Source: Macrostomum lignano
Lineage: Eukaryota
Length of the DNA: 64,000 nt
Reading direction: 5' to 3'
Assembly: GCA_002269645.1 (NCBI GenBank)
Contig: NIVC01002901.1
Span: 1 to 64,000 of the forward strand
Shown in pieces: positions 1,171 through 53,955 of the stretch. The notes below the pieces were generated by a model, which saw nothing but the letters and a program-made list of their open reading frames with translations, made no database searches and was not told the origin of the DNA. The number at the start of each line of letters is the position of its first letter. Position 1 is the first letter of the stretch. The position numbers were made by a program, and so were the translations under genes.

Positions 1171-1973
1171 GTATTAGAGACAATACAAAGAAACGATTCA
1201 TGTTATTGTTTTTGATACTAGAGCCTTGTCCCTAGATCCTTGATCCTTGTCCCTTGTTATGTGTTCTTTGTCGGGTTGTCAGTGGAGGCAAAGTTTTACT
1301 CGTTCACATCGCCGTCTAATAAGGCCAATTTTATGGCGATGAGAACGAGCCTTTGAAGCAGAAATAAACTCTTCTTAGTTTGCATTTTTCTTTGGAAACT
1401 TGAAATTTTAACGGATTCCAAGAAGCGACAAGTCCCGTTCCACTTCTTCTAGTGGTCCTCACAGTGTGGAAATTTGATGTCTGCTACAAATAATGCTACT
1501 GCTAGTAGTGTCAGGCATGTAGCTTCTGCCAGCTAGCTCGTCCAGCTCAATAGTAGCCATTGTGCACCGCAATGCTCCAACGTATACGCGAGGCAAGAGA
1601 AACTTCGCTTCTGTGTTTCAACGGGACGGGGCAAGACGCACGCAGCGAATATTTATTTGAGCTGAGTAAATTGTTCTTGAAAGGCTGCACTGCACATCTT
1701 CTGTGCGGTGAGCACGGTTAGAAACCCTTCTGCACCGCATATATTTAGTCTCTGCTTGCTAGACGGACTCAAAGTAAAACATACCACCGTGCATCGAGTA
1801 TTAAGAAAAACAATTTTCGAAAGACAGCATCCTCACTCTTGAAATTAGTTAGTAGGTAAACTGTCTACCTTCATGGCGACAAGAATTAGTAATCAATAAC
1901 TGTAAATATTTGGCAACATCAATATTTGGCACTCGTTATACGCTTTCTAAGTAGACGAACGCGCGCTCTAAAG

Positions 1974-3035
1974 ATGGATGCCACATCCGTTCTCCGAGTG
2001 GTTCTCAGCGTCCTGCTGGTGCCGGCTCTGGTGCTCAACATCACATTTCTGGTGTTCGGCGTCCGGCACAAGATTGGCAAGCCGCTTTGCTCGCATCTGC
2101 TCCGCAGTCAAGCGGTCATCGACTCGCTCCAGATGCTGCTCAATCTTCTTAACCTTCAGTACTTTGAGTTCTTCCCGCTGCCATCGCAGTCTCTTCCCGA
2201 CTCGATTTGGGAGGCCTACTGCAAGCTGGCCTACAGCGAGATTTTCCACTGGGCTCTGGTGTGCATGAGTGTCTACAACCTCGCATGCCTGGCCGTTGAG
2301 CGCTGCTGCTGTCTCTCCGCGCACAGCTGGTACAAGAGTCACCAGTGCCTGCTTGCGGGCTGCTTCATTGCGGCCGTGCTGGCAGCCCCATTCTTTGTGC
2401 AGGTGCCCTTCTGCTTCCTGGCGATGATACTGGTGAAGACACCGGACGATTCGCCGTTGCTTAGCAACAGCACATCAGTGAATACAACCGCCGAACCTGG
2501 CGTGTGGAAGCATTGCGAGTTTAGCCGAGAAAACCAGCAGATGGCGATCGCCTTTGGAATCAGCTACGTGATTCTGTTTTGGATTTTGCCAACAGTCCTG
2601 TCCATCAGCATGTACTTGGTGATCCTGCGAACGTTCCTGCGTTCCAGCAAGACGCAGGCCGAGATGTGCAGCCGCGGCAGCAGAATGGACGGCCCAACCA
2701 AACGACTGACCCTCATGACCTGCGTCACCAGCGGCGCCTTTGTCCTCCTGTTCGCCACGGACTCGATCAGCTTCCTGCTCTTCACCGTTGGAGTGCCGAT
2801 TGAGAGGCGAGGCGCCCTCGACAGCGTGGACTCATTCCTGCTCAGCCTCAACAGCGCCGTCAATCCGCTGCTCTACCTCATCTTCATGCCCAAGTTTCGC
2901 GAGTTCATCACCTGCGCCGGCTGGAGGGAGCAGCGCAGGCTGCGGCGCTATGATGCCGACGAGCCAGCAGACGGCAGGTCCGCGGCGACTGCGGCTTCGG
3001 AGAGCTCCGGTGAGGCAGGCACAGTGCCTGGGTAG
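1974..3035 (+). CDS. Intronless class A (rhodopsin-like) GPCR, 353 aa, probable peptide-receptor-like orphan
   Basis: ATG at 1974; seven hydrophobic segments; TM3 end LAVERC (DRY position), TM7 NSAVNPLLY (NPxxY), Cys at top of TM3 (YCKL) and in ECL2 (WKHCEF). Confidence 0.9.
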   Translation: MDATSVLRVVLSVLLVPALVLNITFLVFGVRHKIGKPLCSHLLRSQAVIDSLQMLLNLLNLQYFEFFPLPSQSLPDSIWEAYCKLAYSEIFHWALVCMSVYNLACLAVERCCCLSAHSWYKSHQCLLAGCFIAAVLAAPFFVQVPFCFLAMILVKTPDDSPLLSNSTSVNTTAEPGVWKHCEFSRENQQMAIAFGISYVILFWILPTVLSISMYLVILRTFLRSSKTQAEMCSRGSRMDGPTKRLTLMTCVTSGAFVLLFATDSISFLLFTVGVPIERRGALDSVDSFLLSLNSAVNPLLYLIFMPKFREFITCAGWREQRRLRRYDADEPADGRSAATAASESSGEAGTVPG

Positions 3036-3893: not shown

Positions 3894-3921
3894 TTAGGAT
3901 TAGGGTTAGGGTTAGGGTTAG
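3894..3921 (+). repeat. Short interstitial telomere-type repeat (TTAGGG)3 with degenerate flanking units
   Basis: ttaggattagggttagggttagggttag. Confidence 0.7.
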
Positions 3922-5922
3922 TCTTGTCTCGAGCAAATGTAAACTGGCTTATTGTCAAACACAAAAGCGAATTTGCACTGGCCCACGCAGCAGCGAACGT
4001 AAAAGTCGTCGCACGAAGTGCCCAGCGGAGCGCAGTACATGGTCTTGTCCGTGACGGCGGCCTCCGAAACTATAATGTAGTTGGTGCACAGGTGCAAGCT
4101 GGCTTTAATCTTTAGTTTTTTGACATATTGCAGCATGATGCATGAGCATAAGTTCACATGATCCTCTTCAGCAACAAAACTCTTAACTCGCGTTGGAATC
4201 TGGTGACAACTTGTATACCTCATTTAATCAATCATGTTTTGCAATTTCTATCATCAATGACTGGCAATTTCTTGAATAGCGTAAAAAAGCTAGCAAATCA
4301 TTCAATCAAACCAAGGACTCACCAAAACTGTCTGAGAGAATGAGAAACATCAGGAGAAGCTGCAGTTGCACCATTCCGTCGGACTCACACGGCAAGCGTC
4401 GGATAATGAAATAAATAATTCAATATCAAATGAAAGCTGCAAGACTGCTGAAGTAGACACACTATACCATAGAGTAAAGTGCGATAGCGTAATGGCGTAG
4501 GTTTCTAAAATAGCATCTGGAATGCATGCTGAGCAAGTTATTATAGACTAGCTTACTTGATCCTGAAACCTGAAAAGTAAGATGAGTTGGTTATATCTTA
4601 TACTTAACATACACATACGAATTCTCAAAGTAAATCTCTAGCCCTAACTAACTAAATACAAGCAATTTTTTACTAAAGTTACTACTTACATGCCTATTAC
4701 ATGAATTTTTGGAATACGACTTGTCTTGTGACACCGTAGCGGTCTGGAGTCGCAATGGTGACAGAATGAAGGCAGTATACTTTCAGCCTTCATCTTCCCT
4801 GTTCTACGAGCTAAAAGCACTTAACAGGTTTATAAATTATTTACCTTGCTCCCTCTGACTCTCACACTGCTCCCTCTTAACTCATTCATCCTAACTCCCC
4901 TTGCTCCCTGCTCAATCCTGACTCGCCCTGATCTCTCCAGGCTCTCCTCGCTCCCTCCTGACTCATCCGATAAAACGAATCAGCAGCCATGCGCGACCCA
5001 ACGACCCTTCATCCGTTGCTGGACTTTCTATCGCGCAAAAAGCCTCTCTTTACTACATTTGTGGTTGCATTGCGTCACAAAGAGAATCTGCCGACCGAAC
5101 GATTGAAACAAACTTGCCTGGTATGGATACTTCGACTGCTTGTAGCGAGTTCACCATGCCAGTGTCTCGAGGGAAGCTGAGTTTCAACTGAGTCTTGGTG
5201 CACATCCTCTTGACTCTGGGCAGCGCTGTGTTAACAGTTACGCGCTTGTGTTTGAGAACATCTTCGAGAATGTTTCGGATGTTTAGCTGCATCCTGATCA
5301 GCTGTGTCGAGTGTCTCGGAGGCTGGCTAAAGGAAACGCGCAGAGACTCCGAAACTTCGAGGCTTCACAAACTGAAACCTGTCTGGATGTGAAGGAACAC
5401 AGTAAATTTCAAGTTCCTGGCGACTGTCACTGAGATTTTTGCGAGTGTCAGTAGTATCAATGTATTTGATTCTCAATGCGGTTCAACGAAAAAACTGTTT
5501 CTTTCGAACAAAAACTTAACAGCATATCTCGTACGAGTGTGCTCCGACTTTTTATAGCCTTCTACGTTTGCTTTATACTCGTAGTTTTATACTGAGTAGC
5601 GACAAAATATATTTATAAAACACGAGGGCAAAAATTTTATGCCGGATGTAATTAGGTGGCGATATATGAAGCGTTCGCAGCTTTATTGAAAAGGGACTTC
5701 ATTGCCATAGACAGCTGAAGCAAGCGGCCTTTTCTAGAATTTCCACCATTCGTGAGTGTAACATCCTGAGTTGTTATGTTCAGTAGTCCTTGGATGGGGT
5801 AAATAGGAAAGGCAAGCAAACCAAATTCGCTGACAATTAGTAGCAGTGTGTTACTACATATTGCCTGGACCGAGAAACAAAGCTGGAACGCGAACCACCA
5901 GAGCACATAGTACAGCTCGTCC

Positions 5923-8900
5923 ATGACCCCGAGCGTCGAGTGCAAGCAATCGACCAGCATTCCAAACTGCATCCGTCAGTTTGGATTTCTGCTTCTGCTC
6001 CTACTGAAGCTGAAGGCATGGCGGAATGTCTTCATTGTTGTTCCGGTCCTGCTGCTGATTTCCAACCTGTACGTGCTGCCCTGGCAAATGAGCATGCGAC
6101 CTCGAACTCGTACCGCAGGAGATGGACGCCAAATTGTGTTCTATGGCACCCGAGAGTTCGCGGCAGCGCAGGTGAAAGTCCTGTTGGATCGTTCGGACGA
6201 GGAAAAGACGTCGAGCCTTATCCTGGCCAGCGGCGACGGCAGCTGGATCGAGGACTGCCGAGCGGAGACCGACTGCAGAGAGAGGCTCATTCATCAGTCC
6301 GATGCCTCAGTCGTTGCGCATCTGCGGTACTCAAGCAAATCGGAGAAGTCGCGACACGTCCTGGACTGTCTTAACGAAGGGAATTCTCATCTCATGTGCG
6401 CCTTTATCTACCAGGCCATGGTCCAGTCAGCACATTTGAGACCGCGAAATGAAACTGCGATAAACGTGCAGCTGTTTGAAGTGCACAACTTTGGACAGTC
6501 GGTGAAGCCTCAACAAGCCGAGAATTCGGAGAGAAGAAAAAATTTATCCCTACCGAACTCGGTTTGCGCCGACTGGATCAATAGCGGCGAGCTGTCCAGG
6601 CTCACTGAAAATGGCACACCTTTTACTGTCTCACTAGCAGCTTTTGGGGTGACTTTTTACCTGCTCATCTCCACCGTTTCCTGCGTTCACATTCTCAAAT
6701 CTGAGGGCTTCCTGCAGCAGCAGTTTCAATGCGGCCTGTCCGTGTCTGCCTACTGGCTTGTTGTCTGGCTCTTCACGCTCACCGAGTGCCTCGTGTTCGC
6801 CGGAGTATTCATGGTGTCCCACGCTATGCAGTGTCCTGGGCTTTATTCAGCCGCAGCCATTGCTCAAATGTATTTTTTTGTAACTCTTTTCAGCCTTAAC
6901 CTGTCGGCCCTATTGCTGCTTCTGGAGATGCTGCTGCCGTCAATGCTGCTTGTGTCTATCGTGGCGATCAAAATTAACGTCGGCCTTGTTTTGGCATTCT
7001 CATTCAGCGATTATTTGGCAAAAAAGGCGCCCTACGTGCTGTATTTCTTCCCGCCAATGTTCGCAAAGGAATTTGTTGCTGGGCGAATGAACTCTGCCGT
7101 TGAGCAGCTTTGGACTGAAATGAGCATCGGAGAAGACGACGCTTTGCGCTTCTCCAACATTCTGGCAGCCAATTTGGTTTCTCTTCTGCTTCAAATACTG
7201 CTGCTGGTGTACTTAGACTTTCTTCTGAAGACTGGCAACGGACTCTGCCTGGCGCCCTACTACCCAGTCACGGCCGAGTTCTGGTTTCCTCGAAACCTGC
7301 GAGATGAAAGTGTGGGAACAAAGAAAGCTACTGAAAGCGAACCGCACATCGAGCCTGTGATGCGGCTCAACCCTGTTGTTGTTGTTGAAGAGCTCAGCAA
7401 GAGTTACAGCAACGTCTGCCTTTGCTGCTCCGAAGCTCCGATTGTTTTAAACAAATTATCATGTAAGTAGCAAAGCTGGTCGCTCAGTATTAACGAGTTG
7501 AAAATATCTGTACCTGTAAACATGCCTCCCAAATTGTGTTGTAGGCACCATTTACCGAGGCCAGATCACGGCTCTCATCGGACACAACGGCGCTGGCAAT
7601 TCGACACTTATTAAGATCCTCACAGGCGAGGAGCTGCCAGACGAGGGAACGGCCCACATCGGCGGCTGTCTGGTGACGAGCCCGCTGCTCCGTCTGTCGC
7701 TCAGAGGTCGGATCAGCAAGTGTCCGCAGTTTGACGCCCTCTGCGACTCGCTCACCGTGATGGAGTGCATCCGAGTCACGCTGGTCAGCAGGGCGGCCAG
7801 CGACACCAGCCAGCTGGAGAGAGCTCGCGGAATGCTGCAGAGACTCGGTCTGGGAGACAAGGAGGATGTGCTGTCTTGCGACCTGAGCGGCGGTCAGAAG
7901 AGGAAGGTGAGCACGATCCTGGCTCTGCTGGGCGACCCGGACGTTGTGTTCCTCGACGAGCCAACGAGCGGACTGGACCCGGTGTCGAGGCGGCAGCTGT
8001 GGCAGCTGCTGCAGGAGGAGAAGAGCGTCCGCTCCATCATCCTGTGCACGCAGTTCATGGACGAGGCGGACATCCTGGCAGACCGCAAGATCTTCCTGTG
8101 CGGCGGCAAGATCGTGTGCGCTGGGTCTTCGATGTTTCTGAAGCGAGCGTTCGGCTGCAGCTTCACGCTGAATGTGTCGCTGAAGTCCAAGTCAGGCGCG
8201 GAGTCGCTGCTGGCCAAGCTGAAGCAGGTCCATGTGAAAAGCCATGAAGAAACCGAGCTTCGGCTGCAAGTTCCAGCTTTGGATTCGTCAATTTTAACGG
8301 AAGCAGTTCAGTTCTGGAGACCAGCACCGAGGTCGAGACTTTTGGCCTGTCGCAAGCATCTCTGGGCGACATCTTTATGAGGCTTAGTGGAATGGAATCC
8401 GACGAAGTTATCGAAGCCTTTAAGATGGGCACTCTTTTGGCACCGAACCATTTAGAATACTTGGGTGCGTCAGTTCAAGACACTGGAAACAAAGAGCCCA
8501 CAAAGCTCCACCAACGAAATTTACATTACGCATCGGTGACGAAGCAGTTTTTGGTACTTTTTTCCATGAACATCAAGCGGCAGCTACGCGTCACGTCCAG
8601 TTTAATGAGCAGGTTTCTGGTGCCCACGGCACTGTTGGCGCTCATATGCGCTGGCTCGCTTGTTTTTAAGGACACATCGATAAGCAGTCTGAATGACGCG
8701 GAAACAATCCAGATGGGCATGCTAACCACGGCCTCGGCGATTCGCAGTCGGGACTTCGGCGACGCCTCGCTGGCTACCGCCTGCATAGTTGATGGGAGCT
8801 CAGACAGCCTGTCGCACATAAAAATTTGCGAATCTCTGGCTTTGCACGATCCAGAGGAAGGCAAAATTCCTATCATTGTTTACAAGCCCGCTGCCCAAAG

Positions 8901-11155
8901 TCTGAAGGAGTTTCTGTCGAATGATACTACAAGGAAGGAAATTTTACGCCATCTCAAGTACAATGGCTGGATAAACAAAGACGGTTCCTTACCGCCTTGT
9001 GTGTTATATTATGCTTCGTCATGGTTGGAAAGCATACCCGATACACAGCGCTCCGTCACTGTTGGAGTACTGATTAGTGATGACACCCAGGGTGCCGCTG
9101 TTCATATATACCGCAGGGCGCTGGCAAAAGTATTTCGGGTGTTTGGAATTTCTGATGTCGAGAACACGACCGCCTTATCCTTTATTCGACCCGTGGGCGC
9201 GTCTGTACGCACTGGAATCTCCATGCAGGCCTTCTTCTACGCCATCTGCCTTTTCCCCGTCTCCTATTTGAACGATCCAATTGAAGACATGAGCAGCAGA
9301 GTGAGAAGCCATCTTATGTCCACCGGGATGGGCTTGTTCGCCTATTGGATGAACACATTTGCCATGCACTGGATTCAGTATGCGCTCTGCTTCATGTCTG
9401 CAGTTGCTCTTTTAATGATTTCGGAGGCGTACAGATCGGCGTATCTCACCCTGATGGCTTTTCTTCCGGCTTACATCTTTGGAATTGTATCTAACCTGCT
9501 GACGATCTATGCCATAGCGGCCGTCACTCGGACCAGGAGCACCATCGTCTCCGTGTTCTGCAACATGTTCGTGGTGATTATGCCCCTTGCCATCACACAT
9601 ATCAGCAACTCCATTGCTCTGCAGCTGTTAGTCTGGCTGGTGCCTCCCGCAGCGCCGCTCGGGCTGATCTACAGCTGCCTCGCTTATTTGTTTTACAAAC
9701 GGGAATACTATAACTCTCCGAGTGGCTCCGCACTGCCCGGTCTGATGGAAAGCATTAACAAAAATCCGGCCATATTTTACGCACTGCTAGCCATGCCAGT
9801 GCACATTGTGATCCTGAGCGGCATCATCTGTCTTGCCGAGAACAGTTCCATAATCAGAGTGACTTTTACTGGCGTCTGCTGCTCCGGAGCTCTTGACAAT
9901 GCAACGTACGAGTCAAATAGCGAAATGGACGAAGGTGCTCGAAATGAAGCGGAAAGAGTTCTTGTAGCACCTTTGAATAAGAGAAATGTGCTGGAAGTGC
10001 GGAACTTGCGCAAGACTTATGCAAACGGAGTTCACGCAGTTCGAGGAGTCACATACGGAGCCATGACTGACGAGATCTTCGGTCTGCTGGGCGCGAACGG
10101 AGCCGGAAAGTCCACCTCCATGTCGGTGATTGTCGGCGAGGAGGCCGCCACTGAAGGTGTCTGTAAGGTTCGTCTGCACTCGAACACGTGGATGCTCAGC
10201 CGGGAGGCTGCTCAGATCGGCGCCATCGGCTACTGCCCGCAGCACAACCCGCTGTTCAACAGCATCACCGTGGCCGAGCACATCCGCTTCTACGCGGACA
10301 TCCGCGGTCTCAACTCGATCGAGGCGGAGCGCCAGACTAACAGTTTGATTACGAGTCTGGGCCTGGCACAGCACTGGAACACGGAGGCCGGCCAGCTGTC
10401 GGCTGGCAGCAAGCGGCGTCTCTGCCTCGCCATCGCTCTGCTGGGCGACCCGGCGCTCATCGTCATCGACGAGGCCTCGACCGGCGTAGATCCCGAGAAC
10501 AAGCGCTTCATCTGGGGCGCCATCCGCCGCATGGTGCACAAGAAAAGGTCTGTCATGGTCACGACTCACAGCATGGAGGAGGTCGAGGCTCTGTGCAGTC
10601 GGGTCGGCATCATGAACAAGGGCAGGATGATCTCGGTGGGCACCGTGCAGCAGCTGAGGAGCCGGTGAGCTGACTTTTTGATTTCCAAATGTGCCGAATG
10701 GTTGCCATTTCTAACTGTTGAACACAAAGAGTTCCTCTGCTTTATAGATTCCATTTTATGTGTTAATATGCAGAATACTTTGTCCCCTTTGCACATTGAC
10801 ACTTTCTACTCCCATCTGCAGCCACGGTGACGCGTACACGCTGGACCTGCTGCTGGAGCCGGTGACCGAGTCGGCGATAAAACAGAGAAGACATTCGATC
10901 AAGACTGCGGTGCTGGAGCAGTTCAAAGGAGCGCAGACGCAGGAGGACCTCGGCCTGGGCCTGGTCATGCAGTTCTCAGTGCCGAAGTCGGCAGTGCGCA
11001 GCCTGTCGGACGCGCTGAGGTGGCTGGCGGCCAACCAGAGCCGTCTGGGGGTGAGCTACTGGGCCTTCTACCAGATGTCGCTGGACCAGGTGTTCGTGAA
11101 GCTGGTGAAGTCGTGCGATGAAATGGCTCAGAAAGCCAGCAAAGGTGCCCTGTAA
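5923..11155 (+). CDS. ABCA: Full-length ABCA-subfamily transporter (TMD1-NBD1-TMD2-NBD2), with one frameshift in this assembly
   Basis: Exons 5923-7462, 7545-10664 (frame change at 8312-8314), 10822-11155; GT-AG introns restore LSC|TIYRGQITALIGHNGAG and LRSR|HGDAYTL. NBD1: LSGGQKRK, FLDEPTSGLDP. NBD2: GLLGANGAGKST, LSAGSKRRL, IDEASTGVDP, TTHSMEE; C-terminal SLDQVFVKL. Confidence 0.9.
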
Positions 11156-11684: not shown

Positions 11685-15321
<3,637 letters not shown>

Positions 15322-15639
15322 CGCACCGGACTCGGTCGCCTAGGAATTCTGCAAAATTCTGCATAGGATGTTGCTTTATCAACAAGCAGAACTTATTTTC
15401 TGTATTCTGTAGCGTGCTTGTCAGGGAAAATGCAACAAAAAGTTTTAGATCTTTTATAATTTTTTTTGACGAAAATATACACGTTATCCGCATTGAAGTT
15501 TGTAACAAAGAGCTAGATGTACTATAGTCTACTGGCAGCAAACTTGGACTTTTTTCTTATCGTCTGGCTCAAATGGAATGCAAATCGCCTGCTGAGTTTG
15601 GCTAGCGGGCAACTTTCCTGCCCATGGTATCAAGTTTGC

Positions 15640-16142
15640 GCCTCTTTTGTAGCTGGCGCCCTCTCTGTAACTAGCGCCCCTCTCTGTAGCTGGCGCCCCT
15701 CTCTGTAACTGGCGCCCCTCTCTGTAGCTGGCGCCCTCTCTGTAACTGGCGCCCCTCTCTGTAGCTGGCGCCCCTCTCTGTAACTGGCGCCTCTTTCTGT
15801 AGCTGGCGCCTCTCTGTAGCTGGCGCCTCTCTGTAGCTGGCGCCCCTCTCTGTAACTGGCGCCCCTATCTGTAGCTGGCGCCCCTCTCTGTAACTGGCGC
15901 CTCTTTCTGTAGCTGGCGCCTCTCTGTAACTGGCGCCCCTCTCTGTAGCTGGCGCCCCTCTCTGTAACTGGCGCCCCTATCTGTAGCTGGCGCCCCTCTC
16001 TGTAACTGGCGCCTCTTTCTGTAGCTGGCGCCTCTCTGTAACTGGCGCCCCTATCTGTAGCTGGCGCCCCTCTCTGTAACTGGCGCCTCTTTCTGTAGCT
16101 GGCGCCTCTCTGTAGCTGGCGCCCCCCTCTGTAACTGGCGGC
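15640..16142 (+). repeat. ~19-bp minisatellite (ctggcgcccctctctgtar)n; longer duplicate at about 18665-19535
   Basis: Direct reading. Confidence 0.95.
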
Positions 16143-16454
16143 AAGTTTTTCAAATGATTTTTTCGAGGTGAGAGCCAAGAGTTCTTTCTGTATTTTGCCC
16201 CCGCTTGATATCTTCAGACTTTGAGACAGATTGGAGTATTATTGATGACCATTTTCCAATTGCACACATCTCACACGGCTTGAGATGTGAAATCGCATTT
16301 CAAGACAAATTCTCCAATCTATGGCATATCAGATTTTGCTGATATATTGTACCCTAGCCAACTTGATCATTTTCCACTATTTTTCTGCATTTTCTTCATC
16401 TCTTGATAAAACAATTTTTGAATCATCAAAAAGTTTATTACAGACAGTCAAATA

Positions 16455-17199
16455 ATGTTTCAAATGCTAGCATGCCGACTGCACCTGATCCTGATTGCTC
16501 TCGCATGCGCTGCGCTGCTTGGTGAGTGTTCAAGCTGTGGTGTCACCCATGCTGCACCAGTCACTCACTGAGTCACCCATGCTGCACCAGTCACTCACTG
16601 AGTCTCACATGCTGCACCAGTCACTCACTGAGTCACCCACACTGCACCAGTCACTCACTGAGTCACCCACACTGCACCAGTCACTCACTGAGTCACCCAT
16701 ACTGCACCAGTCACTCACTGAGTCACCCATGCTGCACCAGTCACTCACTGAGTCACCCATGCTGCACCAGTCACTCACTGAGTCACCCACACTGCACCAG
16801 TTACTCACTGAGTCACCCACACTGCACCAGTCACTCACTGAGTCACCCACACTGCACCAGTTACTCACTTAGTCATCCACACTGCACCAGTCACTCACTG
16901 AGTCACCCACACTGCACCAGTCACTCACTGAGTCACCCACACTGCACCAGTCACTCACTGAGTCACCCACACTGCACCGGTTACTCACTTAGTCACCCAC
17001 ACTGCACCAGTCACTCACTGAGTCACCCACACTGCACCAGTCACTCACTGAGTCACCCACACTGCACCAGTCACTCACTGAGTCACCCACACTGCACCAG
17101 TCACTCACTGAGTCAGTTTCCCTCCCCACGGCAGTTGCGGCAGTTCCCACAGCAGCCAAATGCATCGAACGCTGGAAGCTGTGCAGCCGGTCAGCTTGA
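16455..17199 (+). pseudogene. Truncated copy of the knottin peptide gene
   Basis: Exon 1 16455-16521 (signal peptide), exon 2 from 17117 reads VSLPTAVAAVPTAAKCIERWKLCSRSA then TGA (17197-17199) created by the junction to the (TGAT)n array; 4 of 6 Cys lost. Confidence 0.8.
16545..17115 (+). repeat. 30-bp minisatellite (gtcacccacactgcaccagtcactcactga)n forming the knottin intron; duplicate at about 19943-20395
   Basis: Direct reading; bounded by GTGAGT donor and CAG acceptor. Confidence 0.95.
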
Positions 17200-17267
17200 T
17201 TGATTGATTGGTTGGTTGGCTGATTGATTGGTTGGTTGGTTGATTGATTGATTGATTGATTGGTTGG

Positions 17268-17354
<87 letters not shown>

Positions 17355-17375
17355 GTTGATTGATTGGTTGGTTGG

Positions 17376-17442
<67 letters not shown>

Positions 17443-17493
17443 GTTGGTTGATTGATTGGTTGGTTGGTTGATTGATTGATTTACGCATTCCAG

Positions 17494-18347
17494 TACGGCT
17501 CGTCAATCATCCTGGACGTGGTTTCCAGCTTGGCTCGCATCGTGGTGCTGCTGGCGTCAAGCGAGGAGTCCGGGATGGCGTACTTCCCCATACTGATTAG
17601 CTACCGCTGTGTCACCTTGGTGCTGGACGTGAGTGGCTCTGCTGGTCACAGGGATTTGGGGGCGATTCACAGCCATGAGAGCAAAGAGAGTACATGCGTG
17701 AAGATTAGAAAGTCAGGCTCGCTGTACACCTTGTGTGAGCGTGTGGGTGAGTGCCTGTCTTGGCTCAGAAGTCAGCGGAATGGGCAGAATCGCCTCATCG
17801 CTGGCTGTTGTGGGACCATGTCAACAGTCATAAGTTGTGAACTCAATCATAAGTTGTGAACTCAATCATAAGTTGTGAACTCAATCATAAGTTGTGAACT
17901 CAATCATAAGTTGTGAACTCAATTATAAGTTGTGAACTCAATTATAAGTTGTGAACTCAATCATAAGTTGTGAACTCAGTCATAAGTTGTGAACTCAATC
18001 ATAAGTTGTGAACTCAATCATAAGTTGTCAACTCAGTCATAAGTTGTGAACTCAGTCATAAGTTGTGAACTCAATCATAAGTTGTCAACTCAGTCATAAG
18101 TTGTGAACTCAATCATAAGTTGTGAACTCAATCATAAGTTGTGAACTCAATCATAAGTTGTGAACTCAATCATAAGTTGTGAACTCAATCATAAGTTGTC
18201 AACTCAGTCATAAGTTGTGAACTCAGTCATAAGTTGTGAACTCAATCATAAGCTCAACCAACCGGTTTCCAGGCAGCAATTCTCTACTCGGTCTACCTGC
18301 TGGTGTTCTCAGAGTCAACTCCGTTGAACGAGCCGCTGGACTACTGA
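17494..18347 (+). pseudogene. Duplicated exons 2 and 3 of the 4-TM gene lacking their own exon 1
   Basis: Exons 17494-17628 and 18273-18347 match 14487-14621 and 15247-15321 with intact splice sites. Confidence 0.7.
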
Positions 18348-19853
18348 CGCACCGGACTCGGTCGCCTAGGAATTCTGCAAAATTCTGCATAGGATGTTGC
18401 TTTATCAACAAGCAGAACTTATTTTCTGTATTCTGTAGCGTGCTTGTCAGGGAAAATGCAACAAAAAGTTTTAGATCTTTTATAATTTTTTTTGACGAAA
18501 ATATACACGTTATCCGCATTGAAGTTTGTAACAAAGAGCTAGATGTACTATAGTCTACTGGCAGCAACCTTGGACTTTTTTCTTATCGTCTGGCTCAAAT
18601 GGAATGCAAATCGCCTGCTGAGTTTGGCTAGCGGGCAACTTTCCTGCCCATGGTATCAAGTTTGCGCCTCTTTTGTAGCTGGCGCCCTCTCTGTAACTAG
18701 CGCCCCTCTCTGTAGCTGGCGCCCCTCTCTGTAACTGGCGCCCCTCTCTGTAGCTGGCGCCCTCTCTGTAACTGGCGCCCCTCTCTGTAGCTGGCGCCCC
18801 TCTCTGTAACTGGCGCCTCTTTCTGTAGCTGGCGCCTCTCTGTAGCTGGCGCCTCTCTGTAGCTGGCGCCCCTCTCTGTAACTGGCGCCCCTCTCTGTAG
18901 CTGGCGCCCCTCTCTGTAACTGGCGCCCCTATCTGTAGCTGGCGCCCCTCTCTGTAACTGGCGCCTCTTTCTGTAGCTGGCGCCTCTCTGTAACTGGCGC
19001 CCCTCTCTGTAGCTGGCGCCCCTCTCTGTAACTGGCGCCTCTTTCTGTAGCTGGCGCCTCTCTGTAGCTGGCGCCCCTCTCTGTAACTGGCGCCCCTCTC
19101 TGTAGCTGGCGCCCCTCTCTGTAACTGGCGCCCCTATCTGTAGCTGGCGCCCCTCTCTGTAACTGGCGCCTCTTTCTGTAGCTGGCGCCTCTCTGTAACT
19201 GGCGCCCCTCTCTGTAGCTGGCGCCCCTCTCTGTAACTGGCGCCCCTATCTGTAGCTGGCGCCCCTCTCTGTAACTGGCGCCTCTTTCTGTAGCTGGCGC
19301 CTCTCTGTAACTGGCGCCCCTCTCTGTAGCTGGCGCCCCTCTCTGTAACTGGCGCCCCTATCTGTAGCTGGCGCCCCTCTCTGTAACTGGCGCCTCTTTC
19401 TGTAGCTGGCGCCTCTCTGTAACTGGCGCCCCTATCTGTAGCTGGCGCCCCTCTCTGTAACTGGCGCCTCTTTCTGTAGCTGGCGCCTCTCTGTAGCTGG
19501 CGCCCCCCTCTGTAACTGGCGCCCCCTCTGTATCTGAGGGCAAGTTTTTCAAATGATTTTTTCGAGGTGAGAGCCAAGAGTTCTTTCTGTATTTTGCCCC
19601 CGCTTGATATCTTCAGACTTTGAGACAGATTTGAGTATTATTGATGACCATTTTCCAATTGCACACATCTCACACGGCTTGAGATGTGAAATCGCATTTC
19701 AAGACAAATTCTCCAATCTATGGCATATCAGATTTTGCTGATATATTGTACCCTAGCCAACTTGATCATTTTCCACTATTTTTCTGCATTTTCTTCATCT
19801 CTTGATAAAACAATTTTTGAATCATCAAAAAGTTTATTACAGACAGTCAAATA

Positions 19854-20562
19854 ATGTTTCAAATGCTAGCATGCCGACTGCACCTGATCCTGATTGCTCT
19901 CGCATGCGCTGCGCTGCTTGGTGAGTGTTCAAGCTGTGGTGTCACGCATGCTGCACCAGTCACTCACTGAGTCACCCACACTGCACCAGTTACTCACTGA
20001 GTCACCCACACTGCACCAGTTACTCACTGAGTCACCCACACTGCACCAGTTACTCACTGAGTCACCCACACTGCACCAGTTACTCACTGAGTCACCCACA
20101 CTGCACCAGTTACTCACTGAGTCACCCACACTGCACCAGTTACTCACTGAGTCACCCATGCTGCACCAGTCACTCACTGAGTCACCCACACTGCACCAGT
20201 CACTCACTGAGTCACCCACACTGCACCAGTCACTCACTGAGTCACCCACACTGCACCAGTCACTCACTGAGTCACCCACACTGCACCAGTCACTCACTGA
20301 GTCACCCACACTGCACCAGTCACTCACTGAGTCACCCACACTGCACCAGTCACTCACTGAGTCACCCACACTGCACCAGTCACTCACTGAGTCAGTTTCC
20401 CTCCCCACGGCAGTTGCGGCAGTTCCCACAGCAGCCAAATGCATCGAACGCTGGAAGCTGTGCAGCCGGTCAGCTGAGTGCTGCACCGGCTACTGCGGCT
20501 GGTACCTGGCGGGCAGCTTGGAGACGCACTGCGGTCCCAGCGACTTCATGCCTCCTCGCTGA
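19854..20562 (+). CDS. Secreted inhibitor-cystine-knot (knottin, C-C-CC-C-C framework) peptide precursor, 77 aa, 2 exons
   Basis: Exon 1 19854-19920 MFQMLACRLHLILIALACAALL, phase-1 intron 19921-20395 (GTGAGT..CAG), exon 2 20396-20562 VSLPTAVAAVPTAAKCIERWKLCSRSAECCTGYCGWYLAGSLETHCGPSDFMPPR*; spacing CX6CX5CCX3CX11C. Confidence 0.85.
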
Positions 20563-27957: not shown

Positions 27958-27968
27958 TGTCTGTCTTA

Positions 27969-28060
<92 letters not shown>

Positions 28061-28160
28061 TTCTGTCTGTCTGTCCGTCCGTCTCAGTATCCGTCTGTAT
28101 GTCTGCTTGATCTGTCTGTCTGTCTTAGTCTGTCTTAGTCTGTCTTAGTGTCTGTCTTAG

Positions 28161-28205
<45 letters not shown>

Positions 28206-28240
28206 CAGTGTCAGTCTGTCTGTCTGTTTGATCTGTCTGT
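27958..28240 (+). repeat. (GTCT)n microsatellite
   Basis: Direct reading. Confidence 0.95.
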
Positions 28241-28698
28241 CTTAGACGGGGACGGGGAACATTGGACTTGCGGAAGGGGCCGCAGCCTAGCGGTCTAAGG
28301 CGGCGCTCTGATCTGCCAGCGGCCGGGGCTCGATTCCAAAGTGCAGTCACATTAATTTAAAGCTAAATTAGAACCTCGGCTTGGCTCTACCTTTGCCATT
28401 AACCCCAAGGCACAGAGTAGTGCACATGCCTAAAGATAAAAGGTTAGAGCCGCTGTGTTCACTGATTCTCTGAACAGTGCTGCTGGTCTTGAAAAATTTA
28501 GTGACAATTTTCAGTGTGCCATTTTCACTTCCGACTTGCTTATCAAATAGCTACAAACTCGATCCGATAATTTGATAGCGCGGTTGTAAGCCAAGCAGTG
28601 TATTTATCAATTAAACAATTTGAAAAGTTCAAAAACCAACACTTAAACACGACTGCCCGTAAACACGACTGCCCATTTGCACTGTCAGCATCTGGGAT

Positions 28699-32270: not shown

Positions 32271-34225
32271 TTAATTGTCTGCATCCCAACTTGTGCCAGT
32301 CAGCCCAGCCTCAGTCCACACCCCGTCCGCTTCTTCATCAAACGGCGGAGGCGGCGGCCCCAGGCCGTTCAGCAGCTGCCGCACCGACTCCAGGAGGCCC
32401 GCCAGGCCGCCGCCACCACCGCCTTCTCCGCCCTCGGCACCCTGGGGCTGGGGCGGCGCGCTCGGGTCGAAGTTGGGCATCAGGGAGCGCAGGAAGGCGG
32501 TCAGCAGACCGTCGTCGGCAGCGGAGGCGCCGCCAGCGCCGGCGCGAAGTCGGCGCAGCCGGTCGAGGTCGTAGCCGCACACGGAGTCGGGCGGCGGCAG
32601 CGGGTCGAAGGCGTTCAGCCCGGCCGGGTCGACGTCCGCCGGCAGGTCGGCGAGGGCGTCGCGGACCTCGGAGACGACCAGGTGCCGGAGGACGTTCAGC
32701 GGGGTGCGCCGGTAGCGGCGGCGTCGCCGCTCGGCGGCCTCAGCGATGCGAGGATCCGGCGGGTGGCGGCGGCCGCTTCGGCGACGCGGGCGGCGCCGGA
32801 CACGAGGAAGGTGACGGCGGCGGCCTCCTTCCAGCAGTGGCCGCAGCGCTGCACGTAGAGGCCGCACAGCTGGCGAAGTCCCGGACTCGACTCCCGGTCG
32901 GCCTCGGCGGCGCTAAACAGGCGGCAGCCGGACACGGGAGGCGCGGCCTCCACGCTGAGGCGGGCGAGCAGCGGCGCCAGCACAGAGGGGAACTGGATGA
33001 GCGCAGCGTCCAGACCAGCGGCGGCATCGGGGCGGCCCAGGCGGAAGCGGGCGAGGGCGGCCGAGAAGGCCCAGTTGGGCAGCTGGGTCAGGTGCCTGGA
33101 CGGCTCCCAGGCGTGCAGCAGGCGGAGCAGGAACTCCTCCTGACCTGACATGAGGCAGGCGGCATCGATGAGCAGCAGGGAGCCCATGGGATCGGCGGTG
33201 GGGCTGAGGCTGAGCAGCAGCTTGCAGGTCTCCAAGCAGGCGCGGTGGCAGCAGCGGCCGGTCAAGGCGAGGGCGTGGCGCAGCAGCGCCGAGAACAGGG
33301 CGCGGTTCTCGCGCCGGGCGAAGCTGAGGCGGCAGCGGTCGCTGGCGAAGCTGAAGCCGGGCGCAGCGGCGCATTCCATGGCGTACAGGGCGCGCTCGAC
33401 CAGGTCGGCGGCGGTGGCGGCGTCCTCCTGCAGGCGGAAGACCTCGGCCAGCTGCAGCAGGGTGTCGACGTGGTAGGGCTGCCGGTGCAGGATCTCGGCC
33501 AGGCGGTCGGGCTGCCCGGACTCGACGGCGTCGGCGAAGGCCAGCTGGGTGCGCTGGTACTCGCGGCTGTGCTCAAACCGGTAGGCGGCGCTGCCGGCCG
33601 GAAAGCTGTCTGAGGCGAAGGTCTCCGCGTCCGGCGACATGGACAGGCCGAGGCGGACCACCGGCGGCCACGTGGGCTTCGGCTGGGCCAGCAGGCCGCG
33701 CCGCCAGCCGCCCGGCTGCTGCTGCTGGAGCCGCCTGGTGGACGGCTGGCGGGCCGCCGACTCCCCTGCCGCCTGGCCGAACAGCCGCCGCAGCTCCTGG
33801 CCGCCGTCCAGCAGGCGGAGGTCGACGCTGAGCAGCGGCTTGCCGCCTCCGCCGCTGACGTTCGACACCGCCGAGACCGTCGCTGGAGGTGCCGGGTTCG
33901 AGTCGGCGCTGGCCAGAGCCGCTGCGAACTCGTCCTCCTCATCCACTGCGGCCTCCCCGCCCTTCCGCTTGCCTGCCTTCTTGCTCTTCTTCTTTTTCTG
34001 CTTCTGCTGCCGCGGCTGCGGGCTGCTCGGCTCCGCATCCTCTCCGGCATCCTCAGCCTCCGACTGCGAGTCCTCCTGCGACATCAGCAGCGCGAACTGG
34101 TTGACCCGGCCAGCGGGCTCAGCATCCTCAGCTTCATCTTGAGCAGCCGCGTCCGCCTTCTCCAGCTCGGCCGCCTTGGCCGCGGCCTCCGCCTCCTGCA
34201 GCTTTCGTAAAACTCGACGGGACAT
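32271..34225 (-). CDS. TCF25: Transcription factor 25 / Rqc1 (ribosome quality control), intronless, one frameshift near 32765
   Basis: N-terminal MSRRVLRKL..RVNQFALL; core FEHSREYQRTQLAF..PYHVDTLLQL..DLVERALYAME; C-terminal RYRRTPLNVLRHLVVSE..FDPLPP lies in the second frame (ORF 32271-32867). Confidence 0.92.
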
Positions 34226-47599: not shown

Positions 47600-48498
47600 A
47601 TAAACTGGTCATACTACTGCCAGTTGTGCATATAAACTGGTCATACTACTGCCAGTTGTGCATATAAACTGGTCATACTATTGACAGTTGTGCATATAAA
47701 CTGGTCATACTATTGACAGTTGTGCATATAAACTGGTCATACTATTGACAGTTGTGCCTATAAACTGGTCATACTATTGACAGTTGTGCATATAAACTGG
47801 TCATACTATTGACAGTTGTGCATATAAACTGGTCATACTATTGACAGTTGTGCATATAAACTGGTCATACTACTGACAGTTGTGCATATAAACTGGTCAT
47901 ACTATTGACAGTTGTGCATATAAACTGGTCATACTATTGACAGTTGTGCATATAAACTGGTCATACTACTGACAGTTGTGCATATAAACTGGTCATACTA
48001 TTGACAGTTGTGCATATAAACTGGTCATACTATTGACAGTTGTGCATATAAACTGGTCATACTATTGACAGTTGTGCATATAAACTGGTCATACTACTGA
48101 CAGTTGTGCATATAAACTGGTCATACTACTGACAGTTGTGCATATAAACTGGTCATACTACTGACAGTTGTGCATATAAACTGGTCATACTACTGACAGT
48201 TGTGCATATAAACTGGTCATACTATTGACAGTTGTGCATATAAACTGGTCATACTACTGACAGTTGTGCATATAAACTGGTCATACTATTGACAGTTGTG
48301 CATACAAACTGGTCATACTATTGACAGTTGTGCATATAAACTGGTGATACTACTGCCAGTTGTGCATATAAACTGGTCATACTATTGACAGTTGTGCATA
48401 TAAACTGGTCATACTAGTGCCAGTTGTGCATATAAACTGGTCATACTATTGACAGTTGTGCATATAAACTGGTCATACTAGTGCCAGTTGTGCATATA
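47600..48498 (+). repeat. 32-bp minisatellite (actggtcatactattgacagttgtgcatataa)n
   Basis: Direct reading; period 32. Confidence 0.96.
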
Positions 48499-49009
48499 CC
48501 AGTAAAATATAAATTGGTTGGGGGGGGGGGGACATGCCAATGCTTTGTCCTCCCACCCCCACCTTGTGACCTATTCTGGTAATCAATAATTTTTCTTCAG
48601 GGTGCCAAAATGAGTGCCTGTGGTGCTAAAAGGAATGCCTGTGGCGCCAAAATGAGTTCTTATGGCGCCAAAATGAGTGCCTGTGGCACTAAAATAAGTG
48701 TTTGTGTCACCAAAATGAGTACTTGCAATGCCAAAATGAGCATTCTGTTCATAATGACACCAAGAAGCTAGGTTTGGCAAAGTGACAAAGTTGGAAATGG
48801 GATAGGGGAGAATAAACAAAGAGATAATAAGGCTAGGACTCAACTTTATGAGCTTAAGTTGACATAATATTCTCAATTATCCCCTTGCTTGTTCTCCTAT
48901 ATCCCAAGTTCAACTTTTGTCACTGCCAAATCTACTGCAAACAGAATGATATATCGTTTGTATACATAGTAGATTACTTAGGCTCCATTTTATAAATAAA
49001 TTGATTTAA

Positions 49010-49649
49010 TAGTGTTCCGCTATAGCCATAGCTACGGCTACAGGATCCTATGGCAAATATGGTAAAATAGGTGCCTATGGCAACTACAGATATACCTACG
49101 ACGGTAGCTAGCTGCTCTTACGGCTATGACTATGGAAATATGGTAGTTGCTGTCACATTCCATAGATTCCCGTAGCCGTAGTTATTAATGTTAAAAATTG
49201 AAAAAATATTAGAAACAGGTAGAGTAAAACAAAGATACTTTTAGTAAACTATATTATCAACCTAGAAACTTATAAAATATACTTAAAAAAGTACAATAAA
49301 ACACTAGCAAACTCTAATTTTTATTAATGTGAAAAAGTTTAGCATTAGTACTTTCAATAACAATTAAGTATTGTTGCTCTGAAAAAAGATGAAATATAAT
49401 CTTACAAATACAATTAAGTGTTTCTTTTATTTTTATATTTAATTTGCAGTTGTTTAAGCACTAGGTTATCTTCTTGATTCAAAATATTTTGTTTTTTAGA
49501 CTTTTTGTTAAAACCATGGCTACAGCGACAGGAACTACGGGAATATGGTAATTTTGGGGTCCCTATGGCTACGGAATACGGAGAATTGGAGTAAGCCATA
49601 GTTTTGCTTATGGCTACGGTACATGGACCCTCCTTATGGCGGAACACTA
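49010..49649. mobile_element. MITE-like non-autonomous DNA element, about 640 bp
   Basis: Inverted ends tagtgttccgc (49010-49020) and gcggaacacta (49639-49649) including TA; subterminal inverted motifs ccatagattcccgtag and ctacgggaatatgg; repeated atggctacgg motifs. Confidence 0.6.
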
Positions 49650-49927
49650 ATTTAAATTGACAGGCTCTTTATATATTAAAAGTTCAAGAAGTTCAATTTG
49701 CATATTAAATAAATAGTGTTAGGGATATATCTTAATTTTTCAAATGATTCTTTTATCATTATAGTCCTTTAGGTAGCAGGTTATGTCCTCTTGGTCTTTT
49801 AAGTAGTATTCTTTATCCTTTTAGTCTTTTAGATAACACTTTTTATCCTTTTAGTCACAAATAAATGTATTATCTTGATACTTAGAATTAAGAGAAATTA
49901 TTAGTTTAGCTTGAAAAAAACATTTAT

Positions 49928-50715
49928 GGCCCATTCCATATAAGATAGACATATTTGGGAAATAGAAAAAAGTCAATATTTTTGCTTGTCATTGCCTTAT
50001 CAGCCATTTTTTTACCAAATCTTTTTTGTATGTAATGTATACAATCTAAGAATAAATAAATGATAAAATGTTGGATTAGTATGTTATCAATTGGCAAAAA
50101 GTTATTTTTTGTAAAAAATTGGACATTTTCTAAGCAAAAGACATCATTAAGTTTATTTACCTTTTAAAAACAAATAGAAAGCTTTAAAAGGTTAAAACAA
50201 ACTATATATAAAATTATAGTACTTGCATCATCAGATAAAAACATTATCAACCAAATAAACTATTATATTTTTAATATATTAGTACTTCAAAGTTACTGAA
50301 TTGACAGAAAAAAAATGTTACAAACATAATGTTATGACCATAAGGCTGCTTTTTCTTTTGTATCTTTGTTGCCTTTTTGAGTTTATATATTCTAATAAAA
50401 GAGTATGACTTCTAAAGATGTTCTTAGTCAAATTTAAAAAAAATTATTGCAAAATATCAAAAATGAAAAATGTTATAAGACTTTTACCTTTTAGTTTCTA
50501 TATGTCAAAAATCCTGTTGTTACGACCATAAGTGCCATTCAAGGTTTAATAGCATCTATACTAATGATGATATCTATATGAAACTTTATAAACATATTCT
50601 TGATAAATAGTCTTTTATTCAAAATATTGGTTTAGTATATTCTATTATTATTTCATTTCATTTTATAAGTAAGAATAGTCTGTCATGTTACGACCATAAT
50701 TATATGGAATGGCCC
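49928..50715. mobile_element. Second MITE-like non-autonomous DNA element, about 790 bp
   Basis: Inverted ends ggcccattccatataa (49928-49943) and ttatatggaatggccc (50700-50715, 1 mismatch); internal repeated gttaYgaccataa. Confidence 0.55.
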
Positions 50716-53700: not shown

Positions 53701-53955
53701 AATATAATATACTGACTGATGAAGCTGTAGACCTGGATGGTTGTGTGTATGCAACACAACTAAAAAAGAACAAAACTTCTCAAACAAATAGCTGCAAAAA
53801 GTGTAGGCAAAAAAAACAAAAGCAACGCAACAGCTGGCCAAAAAATGGCCTACCAACGAAAAATGAGCAAAAAAAATTTTCTTCATGCGAAATTGCATTA
53901 CTGCTGTTTTCAAAGCAAAACTAACTAAAAAAGTTTACTAGTAAGGCCTGTAACT

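Follow-up and report, generated by a model that had tools for sequence, protein, structure and literature searches.

The 64,000-nucleotide stretch of Macrostomum lignano DNA analyzed here (contig NIVC01002901.1, positions 1 to 64,000; hereafter the window) carries at 19854-20562, on the plus strand, a two-exon gene that is referred to below as gene 1. As read from the sequence, a leader exon and a cysteine-rich exon are parted by a phase-1 intron. A preliminary description of this DNA had presented the locus as a hidden, unannotated gene for a secreted knottin in what looked like a free-living flatworm. The guess about the organism fits M. lignano, and each of the literal features named (exon 1, the donor GTGAGT, a minisatellite, an in-frame CAG at 20395 and the Cys framework) is present. 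The gene itself had already been annotated. GenBank holds its product as the 71-amino-acid (aa) ‘hypothetical protein BOX15_Mlig016487g2 [Macrostomum lignano]’, which was the sole match among 5.8 billion proteins searched; two contigs of GCA_002269645.1 (Mlig_3_7) carry the gene, which spans 709 bp on one and 1009 bp on the other. The parts of gene 1 are the following.

19837-19842, plus strand: TTACAG, a putative spliced-leader (SL) trans-splice acceptor ending 11 nucleotides (nt) before the ATG (motif match).
19854-19920, plus strand: coding part of exon 1, 67 nt, encoding MFQMLACRLHLILIALACAALL plus the first base of codon 23.
19921-20413, plus strand: phase-1 intron, GTGAGT...CAG, 493 nt; this junction is needed for the public 71-aa product.
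19951-20394, plus strand: 30-bp minisatellite CTGCACCAGTCACTCACTGAGTCACCCACA within the intron (Tandem Repeats Finder, TRF: 14.8 copies, 98% matches).
20393-20395, plus strand: alternative in-frame acceptor CAG of the preliminary description, which adds VSLPTA and gives a 77-aa product.
20414-20562, plus strand: coding part of exon 2, encoding (V)AAVPTAAK and a 40-aa Cys-rich peptide, with a TGA stop.
20437-20559, plus strand: predicted mature peptide KCIERWKLCSRSAECCTGYCGWYLAGSLETHCGPSDFMPPR, 41 aa, isoelectric point 7.8, net charge about +0.8.
20440-20532, plus strand: six-Cys framework CX6CX5CCX3CX11C (regular-expression match; sub-threshold toxin matches).

The start codon of exon 1 is the ATG at 19854-19856, and the donor GTGAGT follows directly after the exon. 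The splice first proposed, from this donor to the CAG at 20395, stood at its donor and shifted at its acceptor. Joining 19920 to 20396 does keep the frame, and the resulting 77-aa product ends in ...AAKCIERWKLCSRSAECCTGYCGWYLAGSLETHCGPSDFMPPR and the stop; the upstream acceptor, however, lacks a pyrimidine tract (CACTGAGTCAG) and is unused in the public model. A second in-frame acceptor, TTTCCCTCCCCACGGCAG at 20413/20414, lies 18 nt downstream, has a real polypyrimidine tract and yields a 71-aa product. The sequence of BOX15_Mlig016487g2 is that of exon 1 joined to 20414-20562, so the public acceptor is 20413/20414 and the transcript-derived precursor has 71 rather than 77 aa. The gene annotation of GCA_002269645.1 was built solely from RNA-seq, by means of StringTie, TACO, TBONE and TransDecoder: StringTie and TACO gave the transcripts, trans-splice and poly(A) reads served to cut the boundaries, and TransDecoder called the open reading frames (ORFs) (PMC5730564). 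A spliced transcript with the 20413 acceptor therefore underlies the public model. The donor (GTGAG) and acceptor (CAG) of gene 1 fit the cis-splice motifs of M. lignano, GT[G/A]AG and CAG, and the TTACAG upstream of the ATG fits the SL trans-splice acceptor motif [T/C]TNCAG (PMC8629364). The organization proposed earlier, with a phase-1 intron filled by a minisatellite between a signal-peptide exon and a Cys-rich exon, was recovered in this two-exon gene. In the ORF list, exon 2 is visible solely at the end of a repeat ORF of 222 aa (19894-20562) that is open through the minisatellite, as had been stated.

Several properties of the exons are those of coding DNA. Codon usage, scored as log-odds trained on the long conserved ORFs of the window, gave +15.9 bits in the annotated frame of gene 1 versus -16.3 and -5.0 bits in the other two. 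The GC content of the exons is 54-64% (64% in exon 2) versus 33-41% in the flanks. Two public Mlig_3_7 loci carry gene 1, with spans of 1009 bp (L001) and 709 bp (L002). The window shares about 97% identity with each of them and matches neither completely, and thus represents a third copy or another assembly. The exons are identical in L001 and L002, and across the three loci compared the coding sequence differs at 0 of 216 positions in both other loci. Unique flanking DNA differs at 7 and 13 of 608 positions (1-2%), a rate at which about 2.5 and 4.6 coding changes would have been expected. This absence of change is modest evidence that the coding sequence of gene 1 is under constraint. The gene spans 709 bp in the window and in L002 and 1009 bp in L001, the minisatellite number differing by ten units.

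The product of exon 1 corresponds to the n- and h-regions of a predicted signal peptide. The leader contains Arg8 and a hydrophobic core of 18 residues (LHLILIALACAALLVAAV), then a Pro and small residues, and its Kyte-Doolittle means over 11 residues reach 3.1. The small-residue motifs VAA/V and TAA/K agree with the -3/-1 rule for signal-peptide cleavage, taken as a heuristic. On such heuristic leader features, gene 1 would encode a secretory precursor of the kind expected for inhibitor-cystine-knot (ICK) peptides. Exon 2 ends in ...AAK-CIERWKLCSRSAECCTGYCGWYLAGSLETHCGPSDFMPPR-stop, with the codon of the first Cys at 20440-20442 and the stop codon at 20560-20562. The mature peptide would have a mass of about 4.6 kDa (calculated as about 4643 Da when reduced, and 6 Da less with three disulfides) and contains the aromatic stretch GWYLAG.

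The C-C-CC-C-C spacing of the ICK type reported earlier is present. For an ICK domain of about 30-40 residues, the spacing was defined as C-X(3-7)-C-X(3-8)-CC-X(1-5)-C-X(4-13)-C, and gene 1 lies within these limits. A strict knottin-type regular expression run over the six frames of the window matched twice, versus 0.11 matches expected in block shuffles. Every small-protein similarity of gene 1 falls on ICK toxins, and all of these are sub-threshold and not decisive. Among Pfam families, Toxin_12 (PF07740) scored 17.9-18.7 bits (E 0.0028-0.0049) over profile positions 2-19 of 30, below its gathering cut-off of 21 bits; Toxin_21 scored 16-17.5 bits (E 0.004-0.011), Dickkopf_N 15-16.5 bits, and Conotoxin (PF02950) 10.4-11.9 bits against a cut-off of 25.1. 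The matches in the PDB were Hi1a (E 0.0045-0.011), PcTx1 and Hc1b (about 0.1) and nemertide alpha-1 (0.066). In shuffles with the Cys residues held fixed, z was 5.3-6.9 for spider toxins of the PcTx1/Hi1a family and 3.4 for nemertide alpha-1, values inflated by selection, as the targets were picked afterwards as the best PDB matches. An AlphaFold (AF2) single-sequence model of the 71-aa precursor has a helix over residues 2-36, with predicted local distance difference test (pLDDT) scores of 83-88 over the first 20 residues; the Cys domain is crossed by helix, at pLDDT 55-67, and shows no knot. This low-confidence model is too weak to count for or against the knot. Since the similarities are not decisive and structure prediction was uninformative, the fold was judged from the framework, which makes an ICK fold of the gene 1 peptide moderately probable. 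It is regarded as very probable that gene 1 is genuine and that its two exons encode a small secreted peptide of knottin-type six-Cys spacing.

A second gene of the same design lies about the start of the window on the opposite strand.

3918-4374, minus strand: gene 2, with the 67-aa product MVQLQLLLMFLILSDSFVSEAAVTDKTMYCAPLGTSCDDFYVRCCVGQCKFAFVFDNKPVYICSRQD and the framework CX6CX6CCX3CX13C (regular-expression match).
4374-4323, minus strand: exon 1, 52 nt, encoding MVQLQLLLMFLILSDSF plus one base, followed by GTGAGT.
4322-4070, minus strand: phase-1 intron, 253 nt.
4069-3918, minus strand: exon 2, encoding ...TDKTMY-CAPLGTSCDDFYVRCCVGQCKFAFVFDNKPVYIC-SRQD.

Gene 2 is 100% identical to the public BOX15_Mlig014969g3, which is present on four contigs, and its in-frame codon-usage log-odds is +26 bits. 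Its product has a charge of -0.3, contains the stretch FAFVF and has no Pfam match. The order of gene 2 (minus strand), an ABCA-like transporter, a 142-aa gene and gene 1 recurs on public contigs. The stop of gene 2 leads directly into a short repeat of telomere-like sequence, TAACCCTAACCCTAACCCTAATCCTAA (3894-3920, minus strand). Paralogy of the two genes was considered, and BLASTP between the peptides gave E 0.10; with no significant similarity, they are not called paralogues. One 20-kb neighborhood thus holds genes for at least two such peptides, which look unrelated.

Both designs can be set beside characterized systems. The alpha-nemertides are ICK toxins of the ribbon worm Lineus longissimus, which occur in its epidermal mucus and target voltage-gated sodium channels; their precursor consists of an endoplasmic reticulum (ER) signal, a short pro-region and the mature peptide, and they have been reported solely from heteronemerteans (PMC5864730). 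Gene 1 resembles them in its predicted secretory precursor and in coming from a soft-bodied marine spiralian worm without a venom apparatus. In an ungapped alignment with nemertide alpha-1 (PDB 6ENA), the first five Cys are spaced identically (CX6CX5CCX3C) and 10 of 21 aligned residues match, with C-I, S, CCT and CGW in common. The last loop has 5 residues in nemertide alpha-1 versus 11 in gene 1, and the Pro-Pro tail is placed differently; moreover, alpha-nemertides have a known activity and tissue, whereas the flatworm peptide is known here from its sequence. The best statistical matches of gene 1, Hi1a and Pfam Toxin_12, belong with PcTx1, Hi1a and Hc1b, a pi-theraphotoxin and pi-hexatoxins that are spider ICK inhibitors of ASIC1a. 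These toxins have in common with gene 1 the start CI.(R/K)WK.C, CC.G and a Trp after Cys5. Loops 2 and 3 of gene 1 are each one residue shorter than theirs and its last loop is longer; the basic cluster (RRR) of the PcTx1 hairpin is replaced by YLAGSLETH, and the phylum differs.

The O-superfamily conotoxins (framework VI/VII, PF02950) have the C-C-CC-C-C framework in common with the M. lignano genes, from which the conserved O-superfamily signal sequence is absent. Delta-conotoxin Am2766 matched gene 2 at E 0.011, with G.SCD.F...CCVG.C.F in common and a similar hydrophobicity. A knottin-fold family is already on record from flatworms: UPF0506, restricted to platyhelminths and reported in Schistosoma and in the secretome of Schistocephalus, has a double-domain 12-Cys motif whose second half reads C-x6-C-x5-CC-x3-C-x4-C (PMC8400842). 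Like the predicted product of gene 1, its members are secreted Cys-rich flatworm proteins, and the second half-motif has the same first four spacings; gene 1 has only six Cys against the 12-Cys motif, and neither window peptide gave a Pfam match to UPF0506 at E up to 10. The gene organization of scorpion toxins and invertebrate defensins, with a phase-1 intron after the leader, is present in gene 1 (67-nt exon 1) and in gene 2 (52-nt exon 1). This is an analogy of design and not family membership. Mygalomorph toxin genes are not known to have such an intron.

Taken as a whole, the explanation that is favored, if only slightly on balance, is that the expressed gene Mlig016487.g2 encodes a gland-secreted, disulfide-knotted peptide with a defensive or neuroactive role. 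Exon 1 would supply the hydrophobic core of the ER signal peptide, the minisatellite-filled phase-1 intron would be spliced out via GTGAGT at 19921 and the pyrimidine-tract acceptor at 20413, and exon 2 would contribute the end of the leader, VAAVPTAAK, and the 40-residue six-Cys peptide. Signal-peptide cleavage, perhaps with trimming at the lone Lys, could then leave a product of about 41 residues, presumably with three disulfides in the ICK arrangement C1-C4, C2-C5, C3-C6. A gland cell may secrete it as an externally acting defensive or neuroactive peptide that would bind ion channels of other animals in the manner of the alpha-nemertides of ribbon-worm mucus, the nearest ecological parallel. 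The two window peptides carry almost no net charge (+0.8 and -0.3) and are rich in aromatic or hydrophobic residues. Near-neutral, hydrophobic six-Cys peptides resemble membrane-partitioning gating-modifier channel toxins more than cationic antimicrobial peptides. The ion-channel or defensive role, suggested by this analogy, is put forward as the likeliest role but a tentative one, less probable than the gene or the fold.

Several observations weigh against this explanation, besides the scores below the Pfam cut-offs and the selected shuffle targets already given. The 18-residue h-region is long for a cleaved signal peptide. The transcript evidence for gene 1 used here is the public RNA-seq-derived model. 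A filter-free phmmer search of 1.84 billion representative proteins returned the protein itself and two spurious matches, one to a bacterial repeat protein of 2312 aa and one to a low-complexity ORF of 190 aa, both of which share only strings of the APTA..C..W type. No orthologue from another species was found, conservation having been seen only among near-identical copies within M. lignano. Finally, the diatom diet of M. lignano makes a prey-capture toxin unlikely. In addition, word-indexed homologue searches with each of the two precursors returned the M. lignano proteins themselves only, and a search with PcTx1, run for a toxin-family profile, returned PcTx1 alone.

The same knotted, secreted peptide might instead act against microbes or in mucosal immunity, in secretions of the epidermis or gut, a reading with a fairly small chance of being right. 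M. lignano inhabits microbe-rich sediment, and secreted peptides of small size with six Cys, whose genes have a phase-1 intron behind the leader, are typical of invertebrate defense. The presence of two dissimilar genes in one neighborhood and the copy-number change seen in a truncated duplicate of gene 1 resemble fast-turnover immune genes. The net charges of the two peptides, however, are close to zero (about +0.8 and -0.3), unlike the clear positive charge of most antimicrobial knottins and defensins, and the best similarities are to channel toxins rather than to antimicrobial knottins. The coordinates of this duplicate are as follows.

16455-17199, plus strand: truncated tandem duplicate of gene 1.

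It has exon 1 at 16455-16521, a minisatellite of 19.1 units at 16542-17115 and exon 2 from 17135, where a (TTGA)n array interrupts the coding sequence past ...CSRSA and contributes a TGA stop. The duplicate belongs to a tandem duplication of about 3 kb (14475-17481 versus 17482-20562) whose unique parts are 99.8-100% identical. L001 and L002 are without this duplication, which marks it as a very recent event or an assembly artefact.

A within-species role for the same gene, as a seminal-fluid or prostate product acting at mating or as an endogenous ligand (an agouti-like antagonist or neuropeptide-like), has a small chance. According to two papers, M. lignano possesses many fast-evolving, lineage-restricted secreted reproductive proteins (PMC5977470, PMC7336406), and the lack of detectable orthologues is consistent with rapid evolution. 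On the other side, Mlig016487 and Mlig014969 are absent from the compiled in-situ table of M. lignano (prostate, antrum, gonads; file 16, PMC7336406), and neither gene id was found in the neoblast, germline and positional supplementary tables of M. lignano papers, which were partly covered; these absences are weak evidence. A full-text literature search for the gene id gave no match.

It is a long shot that the two peptides are true, much diverged homologues of nemertean, molluscan and arachnid ICK toxins, with gene 1 related to the alpha-nemertides or the PcTx1 family and gene 2 to the delta-conotoxins. If they were, a tiny, diatom-eating, meiofaunal flatworm would run a peptide-toxin chemical defense, and ICK channel toxins would descend from an old spiralian or protostome stock of secreted peptides and not from repeated convergence.

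It is improbable that gene 1 is an accident, a short ORF called by TransDecoder on a non-coding transcript, or a read-through one, from repeat-rich DNA, its Cys pattern being meaningless. Consistent with such an accident, the predicted protein is tiny and lacks homologues, tandem repeats open in several frames pervade the region, and the identity among loci may reflect recent duplication only. Against this stands the coincidence of a leader-like exon, canonical splice sites, a junction in the correct phase and a six-Cys framework of which 0.11 are expected per window, together with frame-specific codon usage, zero changes in the coding sequence versus 20 in the flanks, and a second, independent gene of identical design. 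The idea that the minisatellite is translated, giving a long LTESPTLHQ-repeat protein (ORF 19894-20562) with a Cys-rich tail and no intron, was rejected as highly improbable: although the frame of exon 2 is open back through the entire array, the repeat ORF starts at TTG and has its first ATG in the intron, without a leader, the repeat number differs by 10 units between loci, the public transcript-derived product is the spliced 71-aa form, and unspliced reading from the ATG at 19854 stops at 19968-19970.

The favored explanation of a gland-secreted, knotted, defensive or neuroactive peptide places gene 1 within a well-known kind. ICK peptides are widely described, and the flatworm knottin-fold family UPF0506 has already been recorded, from parasites (PMC8400842). 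The literature collection that was searched had no description of knottin-type peptides of Macrostomum or of other free-living flatworms, and UPF0506 was the one flatworm family with a knottin fold mentioned in it. The gene 1 peptide is best filed as an uncharacterized candidate of the ICK type. M. lignano is a transgenic model amenable to RNA interference, and this tractability could make the site of production and the action of such peptides quickly accessible. If the peptides are active channel ligands, a new phylum would join the sources of ICK pharmacology, and the finding would bear on whether spiralian ICK toxins have a common origin. The locus also illustrates how ORF-based scans miss short Cys-rich genes whose minisatellite introns are open in frame; in the M. 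lignano genome such genes have been recovered via RNA-seq only, and the label is still ‘hypothetical’.

Upstream of gene 1 lies a gene for a 142-aa small multi-pass membrane protein, with exons at 11685-11903, 14487-14621 and 15247-15321 and no Pfam family above threshold. Its exons 2 and 3 are repeated at 17494-17628 and 18273-18347. The public-name suffix ‘g2’ of gene 1 suggests a second gene inside one transcriptional unit, of which the 142-aa gene is probably the upstream member. Taken with the TTACAG motif, the suffix suggests that gene 1 may be the downstream member of a small operon-like unit formed with the 142-aa gene. Intron 1 of the 142-aa gene is a 2.5-kb (ATTG)n microsatellite and its intron 2 a 19-bp minisatellite, so that three introns here, counting that of gene 1, consist almost wholly of tandem repeats. 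A further small gene in the annotation (58 aa; L002 17479-18437) has as its intron a (GTCT)n array corresponding to the (TGTC)n array at 27958-28242 of the window. Tandem-repeat density is extreme in the window as a whole, TRF giving 48 rows with scores of 200 or more over the 64 kb.

The remaining content of the window is varied. At 1926-3035 (plus strand), an intronless 369-aa ORF matches the rhodopsin-type seven-transmembrane family (7tm_1, E 3e-10); no gene was called at the corresponding position of the public locus L004, and the ORF may be an unannotated or unexpressed G-protein-coupled receptor or a pseudogene. The ABCA-like transporter at 5923-10668 (plus strand) has long exons (ABC2_membrane_3, ABC_tran) and appears in the public annotation as a 1664-aa protein on one contig and as 345-aa and 873-aa fragments on others. 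A TCF25 homologue at 32696-34225 (minus strand) is a single 509-aa ORF (Tcf25, E 4e-84) within a block of 68% GC. Rfam and tRNA scans of the window gave no matches. At 54258-56108 (minus strand), a 616-aa ORF without a Pfam match is built of Gln/Asn/Ser-rich repeats 13 residues long (GQPQGFNGQANLS and variants), encoded by DNA repeats of 39 bp; it may be a secreted or structural protein of low complexity, or just an open repeat. An AT-rich island extends from 48000 to 54000, with a GC content of 24-37% versus about 50% elsewhere, and is preceded by an array of 28 copies of a 32-bp unit at 47600-48498.

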